DNA of 64,000 nt from Podarcis melisellensis (Eukaryota). This document shows positions 2,275-49,893 of this stretch, piece after piece (the first letter of the stretch is position 1; every line of letters begins with the position of its first letter). Position numbers and translations under genes: made by a program. The notes beneath the pieces were generated by a model that searched no databases, was not told the origin of the DNA, and worked only from the letters and a program-made list of their open reading frames with translations. The stretch lies in NCBI GenBank assembly GCA_964234715.1, contig OZ174280.1; one strand, 5' to 3'.

Positions 2275-2776
2275 AAACTCACAATCGTATGAATTCTCAC
2301 AACATCCCTGTGAATGAAGCAAGATGTTGGGTTTAGACCGAAGGTTGTTAAATTCAGATCAAAATATTTAGTTGTTGTTGAGACAAATAAGCTAAAATAA
2401 TGTAAGGCACCCTTACATGCTGTATTCTAGATACAGAAATAATAATTAAAAGAGGGCTGTGACATCCTTGAGTCTGCTTTATTTCTTTATTATAAGTATT
2501 TTTCTACCACCTCAGGGCAGTTTACAAAGGAATAACGCAATAAAAATGTAAATAGATTTTTAAAAACCATGCACAAAATTATAAAAGATTCATAAAACAG
2601 AATGATTATAATTGCATCTAAAAATAAATATAATAGGACTGAGACTCTTGTAGGTAAGAGCAAGGCTGGTGTCAAGACCAATATGCAGCATTTCAAAATG
2701 TGAGTCTGCCTAGTCTTACTGTTTAAACAAAGATATATCATTGACATCATGTCTGCACTTCAGCACTCTATTGGCT

Positions 2777-3750
2777 GAATTGTAGAGTTGGAAGGGAACC
2801 CAAGGGTCATCTAGTTTGACCCCAGCAATTCAGGAATCTCAACTAAAGCATCCATGACAGATGGCCATCCAACCTCTGCTTTAAAACTTCCAATGAAGGA
2901 GAGTCCACCACCTCCCGAGGAAGTCTGTTCACTGTCGAACAGCTCTCATTGTCAGAAAGTTCTTTCTGATGTTTAGTCAGAATCACTTTCTTGTAACTTT
3001 AAGCTATTGGTTCAGGTCATACCCTCCTGAGGGGGAGAAAACAAGGTTGCTCCGTCTTCCATTTGATAGCCCTTTAGATATTTAAAGATGACTATCATAG
3101 CTCCACTCAGTTTCCTCTTTACCAGGCTACACATGCCCAACTCCCTCAGCTGTTCCTCATAAGCATGGGTAAGCAAACTAAAGCCCAACTGCCTTCTAAA
3201 TCCAGCCCGCGGACGGTCCGGGAATCGGCATGCTTTTACATTAGAATGTGTCCTTTTATTTAAAATGCATCTCTGGGCTATTTGTGGGGCCTGCCTGGTG
3301 TTTTTACATGAGTAGAATGTGTCCTTTTATTTAAAATGCATCTCTGAGTTATTTGTGGGGCATAGGAATTCGTTCATTCTTTTTTTTCAAAATATAGTTC
3401 AGCCCCCTACAATGACTGAGGGACAGTGGACCAGCACCCTGCTGATAAAGTTTGCTGACCACTGATAAGCCTTGGTTTCCAAACCATCTTGGTTGCCCTC
3501 CCCTACACACATTCCAGCTTGTCAATATCCATCTTAAATTGTGGTGCCCCAAACTGGACACACCACTCCAGGTGGGGTCTGACCAAGGCAGGATAGAGTG
3601 ATACTATTACTTCCTTTGATCTGGAGACCATACTTCTATTGATGCAACCTAGAGCATTAGCTTTTTTTGCTGCTTGATCACACTGTTGAGTCATATTAAG
3701 CTTGTGGTCTACTAAGACCCCCTAGATCCTTTTCACATGTGCTGGCAAGC
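2777..3750 (-). mobile_element. CR1 LINE 3' fragment interrupted by a MITE
   Basis: CR1 3' terminus at the left end; minus ORF 3503-3694 gives [19 protein letters not shown]...[16 protein letters not shown], typical of the CR1 ORF2 C-terminus. Confidence 0.9.
3164..3464. mobile_element. hAT-type MITE nested in CR1
   Basis: TIR-like ends CATGGGTAAGCAAACT / AGTTTGCTGACCACTG; partial TSD (ATAAG); same family as 27644-27968. Confidence 0.8.
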
Positions 3751-4531: not shown

Positions 4532-4714
<183 letters not shown>

Positions 4715-8163: not shown

Positions 8164-9006
8164 TAACCAGTAATGCTAACAAAGAAACATCAAAATCTGT
8201 TTGGGAAGCAGCATATTAACTGGCCACCTGTAGAGCTTTGTGAAAATGAGACCATTGTTCTCATTATGCCTTTGGGTTGCTGATGAACAGGTGAAAAAGC
8301 AACCCTCTTGCACCTTAAAGCTTCTTGCACCTTAAATGTCACCCCAGGGACCCATATTTTATTAATACTTGACTGGCTGGTCCAGCACCAGAGCTTTGAT
8401 CCTCTATCTCTTTTTCATCAGTGCATGAAGCAATGGTAAGACACAAGTGAGTTAATATTATTATTCTTCTGGGGCAGTCGCACGTGATCTCACTTCCAAT
8501 ACTTTTTGCAAAAGTTTTGGAATGATCACACTGCTTCATTTCCAATCAGTGTCTATCCTGTAACTTCATGCTGAAAACCTGTAACTTTTTATATTGCATA
8601 TATTCTGGTATGCTTTTATCCTGCTTTTGTTGCAGACAGCAATGGGGAAGCACCTAAAATGCCAAACCACATATATTGCACTATTATTGTATCAATAACA
8701 TGCTGTAGAATACACCTGCAATTAAACACCAGTTTGGATAATATATATAAAATTTTGTGCTTTCTTTTAATGTTTTTATTTGCCGCATTCTGGGATTGTT
8801 TGTGACAATGAAGACTGAGTGGCACATATATTTAAAATAACTATCAGTTAATAATAACCGGGGCAGCTTTACAGTCTGTAAATGAGTCTGTGAAGTTACT
8901 GAGGCTGGTTCAGCTCAGCCCTGCCTATCCTAATACTGTCCTGCAACTGCCTCTGCTGATGATTTGTGGCCAAATACCCTCACACTCTCGTCTCTGCTCC
9001 CATCAG

Positions 9007-9176
9007 GGTACGCTGCAAAAGTTTGTGGATGACTTGTTCGAGACCTTGTTCAGCACTGTGCACCGAGGCAGCGCTCTCCCACTGGCCATCAAATATATGT
9101 TTGATTTCTTGGACGAGCAAGCGGATAAGCACGGCATCCACGACACTGACGTGAGGCACACATGGAAAAGCAACTG
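9007..9176 (+). CDS. PLXNA2: Plexin-A2 coding exon (C-terminal GAP segment)
   Basis: CAG/GTGAG; 170 nt, [56 protein letters not shown]+TG. Confidence 0.97.
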
Positions 9177-9835
9177 GTGAGAGGGGTCAAAGTTTATGAG
9201 TGTGGACAAAAATTGCTGAGATACGGGAATGTGTAAGCCCTTGTGGTCAGAGCAGGGTTTGTCTCATTCAGTTGGAGCCTATTACAGAACTCTCTAGATC
9301 ATGTCCAGCTTGCTTTCTGAAGGCAAACACAGTTTCGGATTCTCCATATTGCTCTAAAAGCAGACGGAGCCATTTTTTTACTTGTGAACTAGCATGTTTT
9401 GTTGCATTTCGTGGGGCCTTAGGCATACATTTTTCACAAGGAGAAATCCTTCTGCCAGCAGATCTATTTAGTTGGATACCGACCATTGATTTGAGATGCC
9501 TGAAACACCCATGTAGGTTTAACAGTGTAGCTCTGCTCCTGACTCAGCCATTTCATGCTGCTTTGCTACCCTCCCTCAGACCTATCTATTCATTCCATTC
9601 AATCCATCATGCATATGTGTAAGCTCAGTCCTGATTTGAGTCACCGATGCTCTAGCCCAGCCATTTGAGTTCCAATGACCCAACAAAAGCTATGCCCGCA
9701 CAGCCCCACGGTGCCTTGCAGAAGCTTACATGGTGCCGCAGAAGAAGTCTATATAGCAGAGTCTTCCACAAAGCAGTCCCCTTCCTCCTTAATTTAAAAT
9801 CATAATCTCTTACTTTTTAAAATGGGAAACATCAG

Positions 9836-16737: not shown

Positions 16738-16891
16738 NNNNNNNNNNNNNNNNNNNNNNNNNNNNNNNNNNNNNNNNNNNNNNNNNNNNNNNNNNNNNNN
16801 NNNNNNNNNNNNNNNNNNNNNNNNNNNNNNNNNNNNNNNNNNNNNNNNNNNNNNNNNNNNNNNNNNNNNNNNNNNNNNNNNNNNNNNNNNN
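16738..16891. other. Assembly gap (154 N)
   Basis: Run of N. Confidence 1.
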
Positions 16892-16911: not shown

Positions 16912-17154
<243 letters not shown>

Positions 17155-17625
17155 TAAGTGGGGATCAATGAATGCCTACTATGTCGTGAGCTGCTTCCTC
17201 CAAATTTCTCCCAAGTATGCAGTTACTGTGGTACTGTCACTGAGAACTGCTGCATTGGGTTAGCACAGACAGAAAAGTGTTGTCTTCTTGTGTCATCAAA
17301 TATCTATTTGCACATACTGGAAGTGTTGTAGTATTAACCACAGTGTCCTCTCCCATTCATGTTCTTGTTTTGCTTCCTAATGTACTTTCCTCTTTTTCTT
17401 TCAATTCATTCTAGTGTTGTTTTAATTTTTGACTGAGCTTTCACTCTTTGATTATCAGTTGTTCTTCTCCCTTCTCAAGCTCCAAAAGTATTTCTACAAG
17501 TGGAGTTGCTTGTTTCCTTTTCCATTACTAAGTAATACAGGGTTGCTGTTTTTTCAGAAATAAGCAGTTGCTAGTTTTTATGTAATGCTGTTAACATGGC
17601 ATGTGGCAACATATCCATTATTTGA

Positions 17626-17979
<354 letters not shown>

Positions 17980-20380: not shown

Positions 20381-20476
<96 letters not shown>

Positions 20477-22032
20477 AGAAAGGAGCAGGAACTCCTGGAA
20501 CAAAGAGATGGAAGTAGTTGCCTCAAAAACTTCTGGGAACTGAGTAAAACCAGCAAGGAGGCTGCTGGGAACACACCTAAAGTACTGTGACAACCTCCAC
20601 CGAGGAAGAGATGTTAGCCCAGATACGTAGCTCAAAATTCGATCATCAGATTTCAGTCAAAAGGACAGGAGAAAACCAGTAACAATGGCGCATCTTAAAA
20701 AGAAACCAGTTGGGTTTGCCAAGAAGTTCAGTTCCTCAAGTTGTACACCTAGAAAGGTTCTGGGAAGCCTAGATTCCTCCATGACTGCTGCTTTGCATGA
20801 AAGTTGTTTGATGTATATTAGGAGATAAAAAAAATGCTATTTAAAGTTTTGTTTTGTTTTTTAAAGAAAAAGGAAAGAGAGAAGAAAAAAATGAAATGTA
20901 ACAAAAACCACAGTGGCCACATCAAATATCCCATTGAAAAAATTCCGCTGCATACACTGCCCCTCCCATCTCATGAAATCCCTGTTGTCTGTGGCTCAGA
21001 TGGATGGTTCGCAAGTGGATTTTCACGCCTTTGGGAATGTTTGAAAAACTCCATTTATGCCTCTGCCTGGGAACTTACAGAAAGCCCCACAAGCACAAAT
21101 TTGCACCAAACCTTTCAAATAGTGCAGCTGGGGAAAGAAAGTCCAGCAGTCTGTATCTGCAAGAGGCACTTAGCAGAAATGTACCTGAGTGGAAAAGCCA
21201 TCCAGTCCTTCAGCCCATCTGTCTTGAAATTCATCTTCAGCTGTGTATTTATAGAGTACAGATATTTTTTTAATACTCCTTATTTACCGTTGGAGGGGCA
21301 TATGATTTTATGAAAGTCCTTCATTCCTCTTCTGCGTTGATACAAACCTTCTCCCTCTTGAAGAGATTCCTCCCTGTCTCTGTGTATTTGACAACTGTGT
21401 TCCTAAGGAATGTCCTGTCCGTTTTGAAGCTAAGGAAATTGTGAGTGGTTTAAACTGAAACTGGTGCATTGTGGGCTTCTGCAGGTGCAATTTGTGTAAA
21501 AACTAATTGGCTTTCTTAGTTGCTTGGGGTGTGGGTTGGTTAGCTTTTGGGTCGTTGTTTTCCTAGTCACTATGTGATTTCTTGCAGTAAAGGAAAAAAT
21601 GTTTACAGCAAGTAATACTTGAACAGCATAGACCTAGTGAGGCAACATATTTATTGCTTTCCCACATTGGATTCACTGATGCTTATGCAATCAGGACAAA
21701 TGGCATTTGCATTTTTTTTCCTCACACCATATGCAAGGTCATGCAAAGGTCGAGCATAAGATTTCTATGTCTAGTGGGAGGGGAGACAAAAGGAAATGGC
21801 ACACTCTACATGCCTGTTAATGGCTGTTGTCTTTGTCTTTGTCCATGTGTCCTGTCTTGGGTTAGGTTTCTTAGCTGACCCTAACAGCCCATTTCTTAGT
21901 GATCAGTTGAAGGCTGGTGTCTGTGAGTTGTTGTTGTTGTTCCTTTTTTTAAAAAAGAAAAAGACCAAAGCTTTCTTGTCCCTTTCGAGAGTGCCAAGTA
22001 GCAGGTGGGATGCTGTAAATATTTCTCTCTGT

Positions 22033-22038: not shown

Positions 22039-24030
22039 TATTGATATTTGTGCAGGCTGCAGCTAAGAAGGGTGACTGGGGCAAGACAATTAGGCCTAAT
22101 GGAAGGCAGGATTATCGACCACACTGTTTCAGATCCCGTGACTGGAATCTGAGTCGGATTTGAGAGAAGTAGAATGGTTCCCTCAAGCAAGGTCTAGGAA
22201 GAAGCTGGTTGTGACACCAGCTTGTATGACCATTCTGACTGGGCCACCACTTCCCAAACTGTATAGCATTTTCAGCATAAGACGATTAAATGTCTAGGTT
22301 TTAAAACAGCTGTTCTTGATGGATACAGTGGATACTATCGCCTGTCTGTTATAGGTTGCCAAGGCACCAGTACTGTACTGGAAAACCTAAAGGTGTTTGG
22401 GGAGGAGTTGTCATGAAGTAACCATTTAGTAACTTTGTATAGCTGTTTGATGAAGGGAATTCTCAGAATCAGGAAAAACAAGGGAGAAATTCAACATTGT
22501 GCTAAGGTGAAAATTTGCTCTCTTCCCCCTGCGCACTGTTCTGGGACACACACACACACACGAGTAAATCAATTTTGGGGAGGATAGTGGCAAGCATGGG
22601 GAGGAGAGGGTTAAAGCCATGTTGCACAAGTGGAAGTCATTGTGCAGTGCTTCCACTGACAGGAGGAGTCATTAGGTGAATCCCACCCCCACCCCAAAGG
22701 CTTTTGCTCCTAACTCACTTCTATAGCACCTATATATCTCAGCTATCTCCTGGGCCTATCCTTGCCACATCAGTCCAAAGCAGGATTTAGACTTCAGAAG
22801 CACTAGAAGGTAATATTATATGCATGAAGGGGGCTCCATGCAATTAGGAAGTGGGGTGGTGCTGGTGGCCCTACCCATGACATTGTGCACCTCTCTGCCC
22901 CCATGTTGAGCATGAACATCTAAATAGGGGGAGCCTATGTTTCTAGAGCTCAATGTGCATCGGCTTCCACAATATATGGAATTCTGCATGAATGGGTTTC
23001 CAAATTGCATGGAAGTGCACAGGCGTAGAGCTGTCTGTTTGTAGGCTTCCTCTCTTCAGTTGTCCATACTCACTGGGTCAGGGAGGCTTGCAGTATCAGG
23101 GGAGGGACCACCTCAGCCCTCTTTCCTGTTTATTGAGTGGAGTCCTTTCATGAGCAGGCTCATACATTATTAAGATCCTCTTAATATGAGGAAGGAACAA
23201 CTTCTCTGGTAGAGCAGACACTTCTTGCCACTAAATGGCTTGGGCAGCCATGTCACTACCCCTATCTCCTATAGTGAGAGATGGAGCTGCTTCCACAGAA
23301 GGCTGAGGGTGAGTGGGTTGCACGTTAAATTCCTTACTCTGTGAGAATCCCCAGTTTTTACTTTCTAATCATTATCCTGAATGCTGCCAGCAAAAGGATA
23401 AAGGAAAGGAGCAACTTGCTGCTTTAATTATAATTCATTAAAAGCTGTGCCAAGCCCACTTTCCCCCTGATAATTCACTTTCATAAGTTTCCCTGGGCCC
23501 TATTAATAGCCTGAAAGAAATACTAATGACTGACCTTGTGCAATAAGCCAAAGCCTTTGACATTCACAGCAGCCAAGGCTTTGCAGCCAGAAAGCTCTGA
23601 TTTACATTGACTTGGCAGGAACAGGGACCAGGAGCCAAATGAATGGAGGCATCTCAGAAGAAGGGCAGCTTGGTTTCCAGAGCGTTACCTCTGTACTGTC
23701 TGGTAGTGTGAGTTTGACTGCAAGAGCAGATTTGTCTCCTCTGTTCCTGAACTTAATTGTTAATGTTTAACAGCCAATTTTTGTTAAAAGAATTTCTACT
23801 TCACCCAATTACAGGTACTTCACAATTAGATCATGTTAGGTCTCCTTCAGTGCACTTTCATTTTTATTGGTTTTCACTTTTTACAGATGTTCTGTATGGG
23901 TGTACCTTCATCTTTCCAAACTGAGGCTGCAGTTTCTTGAGTATTTAGTCAAAAGTAGAGGAAGAGGTAACTCACCCAGAGGTACTATCTAGAAGGGGTG
24001 GGTAACACTAGAGTTGTTGGTTTAGGTTGT

Positions 24031-27643: not shown

Positions 27644-27968
27644 CATGGGTAGGCAAACTAAGGCCCAGGGGCTGGATCCGGCCCAATTGCCTTCTAAATC
27701 CGGCCCACAGATGGTCTGGGAATCAACGTGTTTTTACATGAGTAGAATGTGTTGTTTTATTTAAAATGCATCTCTGAGTTATGTGTGGGGCCTGCCTGGT
27801 GTTTTTACATGAGTAGAATGTGTGTTTTTATTTAAAATGCATCTCTGGGTTATTTATGGGGCATAGGAATACATTCATTCCCCCCCACCAAAAAATACAC
27901 TCTGGCCCCCCACAAGGTCTGATGGACAGTGGACCGGCCCCCTGCTGAAAAAAGTTTTCTGACCCCTG
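27644..27968. mobile_element. hAT MITE with perfect 8-bp TSD and internal ~70-bp tandem duplication
   Basis: CATGGGTAGGCAAACT ... AGTTTTCTGACCCCTG; TCCTAAAG at 27636-27643 and 27969-27976. Confidence 0.9.
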
Positions 27969-28195: not shown

Positions 28196-29820
28196 CTGTA
28201 AACAATTTTCAGATCTGGTGACCATCTTGAAGGGATTTCATAAGGAATCAATGTAGAGAGCTCCCCCCATAACATTTCAAGGCTCTGTGGTACATCTGTA
28301 TCCTTACCTCAGATGCAGGCAGGGAGATAATCTGCTTAGATGCTGTGTTCAGCTCCTCTTAGCAACAAACACAGCATCAGGAAAATTTGAAGAACATAAC
28401 GTAATTCATCTCATCTAGTCATTTGAGACTGCCATTGTTTTTCAACATATGGAATCAATCAGGTCACATAACTGAAACACAGTTTGTTTTCAATGTGGTT
28501 AATGCTTAGGTGTCTGTGTTTGTCTATTGTTTTTGACCAGAATTTCTCTTTTATGTTGTCTGTGTTTTGCCTTCTTGTCTGTGTATTTCCCCCCTTCACA
28601 GATGAAACCTGATGAGGGTCTGAGTCTGAAAAATACATTTATACCAATAAACAAGCAGAAGTGTGGACACTTTAAACCTTCCATATCTTTTGTTTTGACT
28701 TGTTACAAGGCATGTGGTGCTTCAGAGAAGTCAGTAACGTTTTTAAACCAACTTTTCATATGGTTGTTTTTTTAAAACCATGTTGTTGGCCAAAAATGGA
28801 CGCTTTTTTAATAGGATACTATAAAATTGGGGAGGGGAAGATACCAAAATACACTTGACAACTTGTTCATAAGTAAAAAGGGAACTTTGGTACCTGACAG
28901 TTTTAATTCTCCAAAATTTAGTACCATTTCTGAAAAGTAAAAATAGTTGGCATTTCAAAATTTGCTGTCAACATTCTGCTTAGATAATGTCCCAGTGATC
29001 TTGGAACAAGATATTGGAAGGTTTACAGGGACCATACTTTGCACAAACAGTTTCTGAAATGGTGCTTTTGTTTTGAAATGTTCAAAACACTTTCTAGATT
29101 TATTGTGAGCATGATAAAGGTCTTGTCCATAAGATTTCATTGTGCCTGACAGGAGGATGGGGGTTATTTACAACCAAGTATGTTCAGACAGCACTGGCGG
29201 CCGAATCCACCGAGCGGCTCCTACCAAGCCTTGTTAAAATGGATGGGGGCCCTGACGATGCCATGCTCGGTGGATTCCTTTCCAGTGTTGTGCTACAAGG
29301 AATCTATATTCTCATTTGATGTTTCGTTCTGTAACTGCACTAATATCAAAAATAATAATAGAGAGGACCCAAATCTTGTGGAATTAATCTGGTGGGATTT
29401 CTAATAATGATCCAGTTGAGTACTGTAAGGAAGATTTGAGGTGGCATGAGAAAGGGCTTCTATTTAATTTGTCCCATTCCTGGAACTGAATTGCTGCAGC
29501 AGTCTGGTAAGGCTGTTGGACTGCATAGCCTACATGTACCCACTTTACACTACCCTAAACATTTTCTCATCCTCTTCCTCCTCCTTTATACTTGACACAC
29601 TGGAGTTCTGTATTATATTTTTTTTTAAGATGGTTGTCTGGTTTTTGTTGTTTTTACAAGTGTTGTGGGGGGGAATGTAAGAAAGCTGAAGTATTTAAAA
29701 AAATGTTCCAAGGGGAAAAAAGGTTTTTGTTATTCTAATATATTATTGTGTACCTATTGTAAATATGAAACACTCCTATTTTGCAATCCAAGGACTCACT
29801 TTGTACTGTTGTTATATATA

Positions 29821-29826
29821 AATAAA
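29821..29826 (+). promoter_or_regulatory. Candidate distal polyadenylation signal
   Basis: AATAAA preceded by several TGTA motifs and U-rich tracts, followed by a U/GU-rich stretch (TCTGTATCTTGTTCCT). Confidence 0.6.
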
Positions 29827-31827: not shown

Positions 31828-31895
31828 TGTGTGTGTGTGTGTGCGTGCGCACGCGCGCGCGTGTGTGTGTGTACACACACACACACACACACACA
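31828..31895. repeat. Compound (GT)/(GC)/(AC) microsatellite
   Basis: 68 nt of uninterrupted purine-pyrimidine alternation. Confidence 0.95.
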
Positions 31896-31967
31896 ATTTT
31901 CTCATGAAAATTGAAAGGGTGGAGGGAGGAACTGTCAACCATAAGAGTTCGGGGGTGCCTTTAAATT

Positions 31968-34039: not shown

Positions 34040-34712
34040 AGACTGGGTAGGTCAGTCTGTACCAACTTGCCACCACACCCATTGTGCTTCCTCTAACCCC
34101 GGATGGAAGTGCTTCCCAAAGATCCGAGACAGTATCCACCCTCCCTTCCCCACATGTGGACGGGGTTTGCGGCACCGAGTGGGGCTCACCTGGGCAGGTG
34201 CCACTCACCTGCTTGGGCCGGCTTTTGACCCGCCCTCAGCCAGGGAGGACAATGGACGGCCGGCCAGGGGAAAAGAAAAGAGGCTATCTCAGTTGCCCAA
34301 GCCTTTTTTGCTGTTCTTCCTTCCAAGACCAGGATCATCAGGAGCGTGTCCAGGCAGCCGGACTGAGGTGAGTAACTGGCCTCTTTGTGTTTTGCCTGGA
34401 TGGGGGGGGGGGCTTGTCCCCTCCACCAGGCTAGGCTGCATTTTTGCGGCCTTCTTTCAGTAGGCCGCATTTTTGTGGCCTTTTCAGCTTTTGCCGGCTA
34501 GGCCGCAGGGGTGGCCTGCTTGTTTTTGCAGCAGGGGGGCATGGCTCCCCTGCCTCTGCCAGCCCGAGCGGGTGGCACAGCCCCTGACTAGGCCGCAAGG
34601 GCGGCCTGCTGGGTCCCTGGCTAGGCCGCAGGGGTAGCCTGCTTATTTTTGCGGCAGCGGATACAAGGAGAATACAAAGGGAAATACAAGGGGAATCAAG
34701 ATGGCATCCAGC
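34040..34712 (+). mobile_element. GC/CpG-rich element, possibly the 5' remnant of a DIRS/Ngaro-type or LTR retrotransposon
   Basis: Abrupt GC rise, splice-donor GAGGTGAGT, repeated hairpins, ends at AAGATGGC. Class assignment is tentative. Confidence 0.4.
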
Positions 34713-49662: not shown

Positions 49663-49710
<48 letters not shown>

Positions 49711-49712
<2 letters not shown>

Positions 49713-49893
49713 TTTCGTAGATTTTCACGGGTACAGGAATGCAGGTTTTGGTGTCCTCGGGTGTCTTCCCGTGTAAAAGTTGGGGTGTCTAGGCGACGTT
49801 TCGACGAGGAAACCTCGTCGAGTGAGACCTCGTCGAAACGTCGCCTAGACACCCCAACTTTTACACGGGAAGACACCCGAGGACACCAAAACC

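Follow-up and report, generated by a model that had tools for sequence, protein, structure and literature searches.

Within 3' untranslated regions (UTRs), intramolecular duplexes serve as binding sites for Staufen or as editing substrates of ADAR, and hairpins in mRNAs are cleaved by Drosha. It takes binding or cleavage experiments to define sites of these kinds; to our knowledge, no sequence motif tells which sites belong to them. Hairpins of other origins have also been described. Replication template switching makes perfect stems in a single step (Monttinen and Loytynoja, PMC8794818; PMC10710096) and can give rise to de novo miRNA hairpins (PMC10710096). CR1 elements, for their part, terminate in a hairpin followed by an octamer microsatellite (PMC8665684, PMC4316615). 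Finally, there are the MITE-type fold-back transposons, which are about 100 nt long and in which the whole element is a hairpin.

The locus that we compared with these systems is a 104-nt hairpin on the + strand, at positions 29188-29291 of the window (i.e., the whole 64-kb stretch of lizard DNA that was analysed). We read it as a probably young, lineage-specific and neutral GC-rich imperfect inverted repeat that came about via insertion or a template switch, and we give this reading a probability of about 0.5. It is best read in this way and not as a proven regulatory RNA, given that conservation, transcription and selection were all unsupported by the tests made.

The hairpin had been drawn in an earlier, sequence-only reading as a nest of paired arms, and this architecture proved exact in both letters and coordinates: the MFE fold of the + strand gave the same drawing. 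The predicted RNA comprises 34 bp in three nested helices (20 G-C, 11 A-U and 3 G-U pairs; all positions below refer to the + strand). The outer stem pairs 29188-29197 with 29282-29291 over 10 bp, including one G-U at 29191/29288, and its 3' strand was found in the MFE fold and in the context folds alike. It is followed by a 5x4 internal loop, whose 5-nt side CGGCC (29198-29202) contains one complete CpG plus half of a second, and whose 4-nt side is CTTT (29278-29281). Next comes a perfect 13-bp stem, formed by 29203-29215 and 29265-29277 with a pair probability of 1.0, and then an inner stem of 8+3 bp between 29216-29226 and 29240-29251, in which there are G-U pairs at 29219/29248 and 29222/29245 and A29243 is bulged. 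The terminal loop is AT-rich and 13 nt long (29227-29239). A one-sided bulge of 13 nt, CTGACGATGCCAT (29252-29264), interrupts the 3' arm between the two inner helices, and on the 5' strand the 13-bp stem is stacked on the 8-bp stem, so that the predicted fold has 21 nt continuously paired on that strand. The 3' strand of the inner stem also contains the 9-mer GGATGGGGG (29241-29249), of which a second direct copy was seen at 29155-29163, i.e., 86 nt upstream and just outside the hairpin. This second copy could be an alternative pairing partner or the trace of a local duplication.

The + strand fold had an MFE of -52.5 kcal/mol, for a z of -5.57, and this stability was not matched by any of 200 dinucleotide shuffles (0/200). 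Embedding the hairpin in 204, 304, 504 or 904 nt of its surroundings left the fold as it was, the pair probabilities averaging 0.96-1.0. The minus strand reached -48.2 kcal/mol (z = -4.53), meaning that the sense strand was better by 4.3 kcal/mol; this gap is due to the three wobble pairs. A strand bias of the wobbles had been claimed beforehand and is borne out, as 3 of 3 read G-U on the + strand and C-A on its complement, an outcome with a chance of 1/8 under a neutral DNA palindrome.

We then considered how rare such a fold is in the window. By absolute energy in 104-nt windows just three other places in the 64 kb exceeded the hairpin, and all three are repeats: a Penelope-type near-perfect palindrome between two (AT)n tracts at ~49.7 kb (49700-49890), which is the window maximum at -85 kcal/mol per 104 nt; a long microsatellite palindrome at ~31.8 kb (31828-31897), made up of (TG)n, a GC-rich centre and (CA)n, which is the second strongest; and, at ~34.4 kb (34390-34650), short hairpin units in a GC-rich array, which folds very strongly on both strands. 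When MFE was regressed on GC across the + strand loci of the 64-kb window, the hairpin lay 3.5 SD below the window mean, a deviation equalled or exceeded at 12 distinct loci on that strand. Given these 12 loci, strong local hairpins are common here, at about one per 5 kb after GC correction, though the fold itself is real and non-random. Because strong hairpins are this frequent, a striking fold is no proof of function, and in this repeat-rich lizard genome such a fold together with retained CpGs is by itself no sign of function.

The CpG content of the hairpin is the sole basis for considering it young. The sequence-only reading had reported CpG retention in an AT-rich, CpG-poor setting, and we found 6 CpGs in the 104 nt (o/e 0.69; GC 0.58), set in 1-kb flanks with CpG o/e of 0.09 and 0.22 and GC of 0.37 and 0.36. 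From the stop codon of the neighbouring plexin gene to 29.8 kb as a whole the CpG o/e was 0.14, and the hairpin had the highest CpG density of any 104-nt piece from 20.5 to 31 kb. Three of the six CpGs lie wholly in helices, two are wholly unpaired (one in the internal loop and one in the bulge), and one spans a loop-stem boundary, with an unpaired C next to the 13-bp stem. By our own rough estimate about 0.3 unpaired CpG would be expected at background depletion, as against the 2 to 3 observed. The CpGs kept in unpaired parts fit youth better than they fit selection on pairing, and, taken with the sharp compositional edges of the hairpin, they make a recent arrival the simplest explanation: the hairpin would be too recent for its CpGs to have decayed. 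The same signature of youth would result if the CpGs were locally hypomethylated or if the loops were under selection.

A perfect 13-bp stem set against a wholly mismatched 5x4 loop points to one copy event followed by local change, and not to the gradual decay of a palindrome. Most likely, the hairpin came in or formed in one piece, whether as a portion of a structured element that was mobile or retroposed, or through an inverted duplication by replication template switching that was then slightly remodelled. The hairpin resembles template-switch repeats, which have a perfect stem of 10-30 bp beside unrelated sequence, may later take on an RNA role and require neither a TSD nor a TIR. However, template switching copies neighbouring sequence, and the hairpin is far GC-richer than its neighbours. 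Since template switching leaves this GC richness unexplained, insertion is the slightly better of the two sub-hypotheses.

Traces of an insertion were sought in the flanks. There is no target-site duplication (TSD) adjacent to the arms beyond chance, as the sequence-only reading had also stated; over all boundaries and lengths at the arm ends the search returned just two 5-mers, fewer than at random loci. Farther out, a direct repeat matching at 14 of 16 positions (left copy 29109-29124, right copy 29444-29459, + strand) is a weak candidate TSD, and the 319-bp segment between its copies (29125-29443) contains the hairpin. Repeats of such quality were found at 4% of random places (empirical p ~0.04). 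We regard this repeat as a marginal lead: its 16 bp fits no common transposon class, and an adjacent A-rich tail is absent. As in MITE-type fold-back transposons, the whole unit is a hairpin of about 100 nt, with terminal arms that are complementary at 23 of 28 positions, but a TSD of any standard length is absent from the ends of the arms, and the 64 kb of the window hold no further copy. Indeed, neither a second copy of the 104-nt unit nor a further copy of the 13-nt stem arms was found in the 64-kb window.

The young-repeat reading also gains from a repeat copy already present in the same putative UTR (27681-27968; see below), from the 12 loci that are at least as strong after GC correction, from the bracketing 14/16 direct repeat and from the negative searches for a known RNA family. 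Against it stand the searches for a source element (no second copy in the window, no adjacent TSD and no significant similarity to the CR1 3' end in the window) and the sense-strand wobbles, a 1/8 event for a DNA-level palindrome. Taken singly, no argument weighed here is strong.

The sequence-only reading had also assigned the hairpin to the distal 3' UTR of PLXNA2. Of this claim, the gene stands, in the sense that a plexin-A2-type gene lies on the + strand, and membership of its distal UTR is plausible only. Sequence comparison located exons of the plexin cytoplasmic domain on the + strand at ~4589-4691, 8997-9178, 16935-17159 and 17748-17906, and the last coding exon of the plexin-A2-type gene ends with a TGA stop at 20474-20476, 8,712 nt upstream of the start of the hairpin. 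(A run of 154 Ns at 16738-16891 was noted immediately upstream of a plexin exon.) Across the last three exons, a carp sequence carrying the name plexin-A2 was a better match in its residues than a turtle one carrying the name plexin-A4, which supports a plexin-A2-type gene in a comparison that falls short of a full orthology test.

An AATAAA some 530 nt past the hairpin, likewise given by the earlier reading, was located at 29821-29826 on the + strand; UGUA words precede it, and a stretch rich in U/GU follows it. It is a candidate distal poly(A) site, judged from sequence only, and six more AATAAA hexamers occur from 24.7 to 28.7 kb. A distal 3' end at 29821 is thus plausible for the plexin transcript. 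If the transcript does extend to this AATAAA, its sense RNA would be expected to form a very stable, interrupted 34-bp hairpin, whose helix length should suffice for passive binding by double-stranded-RNA-binding proteins; any role would probably be passive at most.

Closer to the stop codon, three proximal blocks (20776-20909, 21594-21655 and 23416-23576) aligned with contigs of two distant species at 71-89% identity; the exons of the same two species are ~84% identical to those of the window, and the alignable contigs stop at 23576. Given these blocks, the first 3 kb past the stop behave like conserved UTR, and the three may each mark a conserved UTR element. One copy of a repeat pair, 27681-27968, also falls within the putative 3' UTR of the plexin gene, situated 1.2 kb upstream of the hairpin. 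Its partner at 3183-3464 has the same orientation, is 83% identical and adjoins a CR1-like element, and each copy of the pair has an internal 64-nt tandem duplication (27728-27791 vs 27799-27862, 92% identical).

Among the alternatives to a young neutral repeat, the one that survives best is that the hairpin is a selected cis-regulatory RNA of the long PLXNA2 3' UTR isoform, serving as a Staufen/ADAR dock or as a Drosha-type destabilising hairpin. Such a hairpin would alter the stability, localisation or translation of the mRNA. We consider this explanation unlikely. It would account for a very stable fold that is unaffected by context, for non-Watson-Crick pairs that are all G-U on the more stable sense strand, and for a GC content that is higher in paired positions (0.63) than in unpaired ones (0.47); it also draws on the well-formed poly(A) site downstream and on the conserved proximal blocks, which indicate that this UTR does carry constrained sequence. 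Against it, CpG retention is equal in loops and stems, equally strong hairpins are frequent in the 64-kb window, the strand asymmetry of the wobbles is a mere 1-in-8 event, and the repeat insertion at 27681-27968 in the same putative UTR shows that the region tolerates junk. On this intrinsic evidence, an inverted repeat that is neutral and lineage-specific is the likelier reading, ahead of a selected UTR structure.

Like the duplexes recognised by Staufen, ADAR or Drosha, the hairpin offers a long interrupted helix, in the putative 3' UTR of a neuronal gene, with 21 nt paired on one strand; unlike them, it is a predicted fold. In the event of both conservation and transcription, it would offer a clean, compact candidate for the isoform-specific post-transcriptional control of a semaphorin receptor. 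The narrower proposal that it is a squamate-specific element, newly acquired and now under selection on the longest plexin isoform, where it would recruit a double-stranded-RNA-binding protein for localisation or decay, seems to us decidedly doubtful.

We searched for relatives of the locus at both the protein and the nucleotide level. The plexin exon at 16921-17154 matched 365 exon ORFs from distant species (~84% exon identity), on contigs of at most 19 kb that end less than 4 kb downstream of the exon and so stop short of the hairpin. Between the window and a plexin transcript contig of 8.2 kb, from a distant species, the coding sequence alone was shared, and no UTR. An exhaustive protein search recovered plexin representatives, with sauropsid plexin-A2 absent among them, and in a word search seeded with carp plexin-A2 all of the matches listed (120 of 120) were fish proteins. 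Exact look-up of 20 ORFs from the window in an ORF-called collection returned no match, which implies that this species is absent from that collection. No candidate emerged when the 74-aa ORF running across the hairpin (29180-29401), a weakly informative query, was used for a protein word search.

The sequence-only reading did not recognise the hairpin as a described element, and the search of Rfam agrees: at gathering scores the whole window gave 0 matches, and with E up to 10 in 28900-29600 there were none overlapping the hairpin. ARAGORN found no tRNA or tRNA-like cloverleaf in the window, and we accordingly rejected a tRNA-derived SINE head.

A further explanation is that the hairpin came from a stringent-type LINE, or from its SINE partner (CR1/L2 type), as a truncated 3' end inserted in the sense orientation, in which case the hairpin would be the structure recognised by the reverse transcriptase. 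There is a CR1-like element in the window, on the minus strand at ~2770-3700. It is a LINE remnant with ORF fragments resembling reverse transcriptase and a C-terminal frame ...LPREVVDSPSLEVLKQRLDGHLS, and its tail end reads CCCTTCCAACTCTACAATTC. An origin as an RNA structure would account for the G-U asymmetry, CR1 insertions do not require a clear TSD, and there are weak word matches in the correct order between the hairpin and the CR1 tail (TGGATTCCTTTCCA vs TGGGTTCCCTTCCA, then CTACAA). Nevertheless, local alignment of the hairpin to the CR1 tail of the window (~2770-2960, minus strand) was no better than to shuffles (p 0.13-0.20), and neither an (ATTCTRTG)n-type microsatellite nor another tandem repeat follows the hairpin. 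Its stem is also far longer than those of described CR1 hairpins, and the window holds no second copy. Like the 3' hairpin of a CR1/L2 LINE, the locus would fold at the level of RNA and in the sense orientation, and CR1-like elements occur in its genome; it differs in sequence (no significant match), in lacking the octamer microsatellite and in the length of the stem. We regard descent from such an element as rather improbable.

Still less credit is due to the idea that the hairpin formed by chance in unconstrained sequence. This idea finds some encouragement in the GC-corrected ranking, where the hairpin lies only ~3.5 SD from the window mean and 12 loci are as extreme, but it sits poorly with the dinucleotide shuffles (0/200 as stable), with the exact match between the three nested helices and the GC/CpG island, and with 13-bp arms that are unique in the window. 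We consider it very improbable.

The faintest prospects are those of a small-RNA gene (i.e., a lineage-specific pre-miRNA or another processed hairpin, possibly born of a template switch), which would suit the size of ~100 nt, the ~34 bp, the 13-nt terminal loop and the known origin of some de novo miRNA hairpins by template switching (PMC10710096), but is opposed by the 13-nt one-sided bulge (29252-29264), which sits in the 3' arm exactly at the would-be Dicer duplex, by the 5x4 loop that breaks the lower stem, and by the lack of any Rfam family, miRNA or other, at E up to 10. Thus, judged as a pre-miRNA, which calls for a stem of ~33-35 bp and no large asymmetric bulge in the duplex, the hairpin departs from the expected form.

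Two other candidates were tried and rejected. The bulge contains the word CUGACGA, an instance of the CUGANGA motif, which brings to mind a hammerhead ribozyme, but neither a GAAA core nor a helix II follows it, the hammerhead architecture is absent, and there is no Rfam match; across the window, CUGANGA...GAAA word pairs occur at chance level. Kinship with the Penelope palindrome at 49.7 kb was dismissed as well, its sequence being unrelated to that of the hairpin. As to the GC-rich array at 34390-34650, its GC content rises to 0.75, and it contains at least 4 copies of a ~22-nt self-complementary CTAGGCCGCAGGGGTGGCCTGC-like unit with T-rich spacers between them; it may represent an array of SINEs or MITEs, or else a piece of a CpG island.
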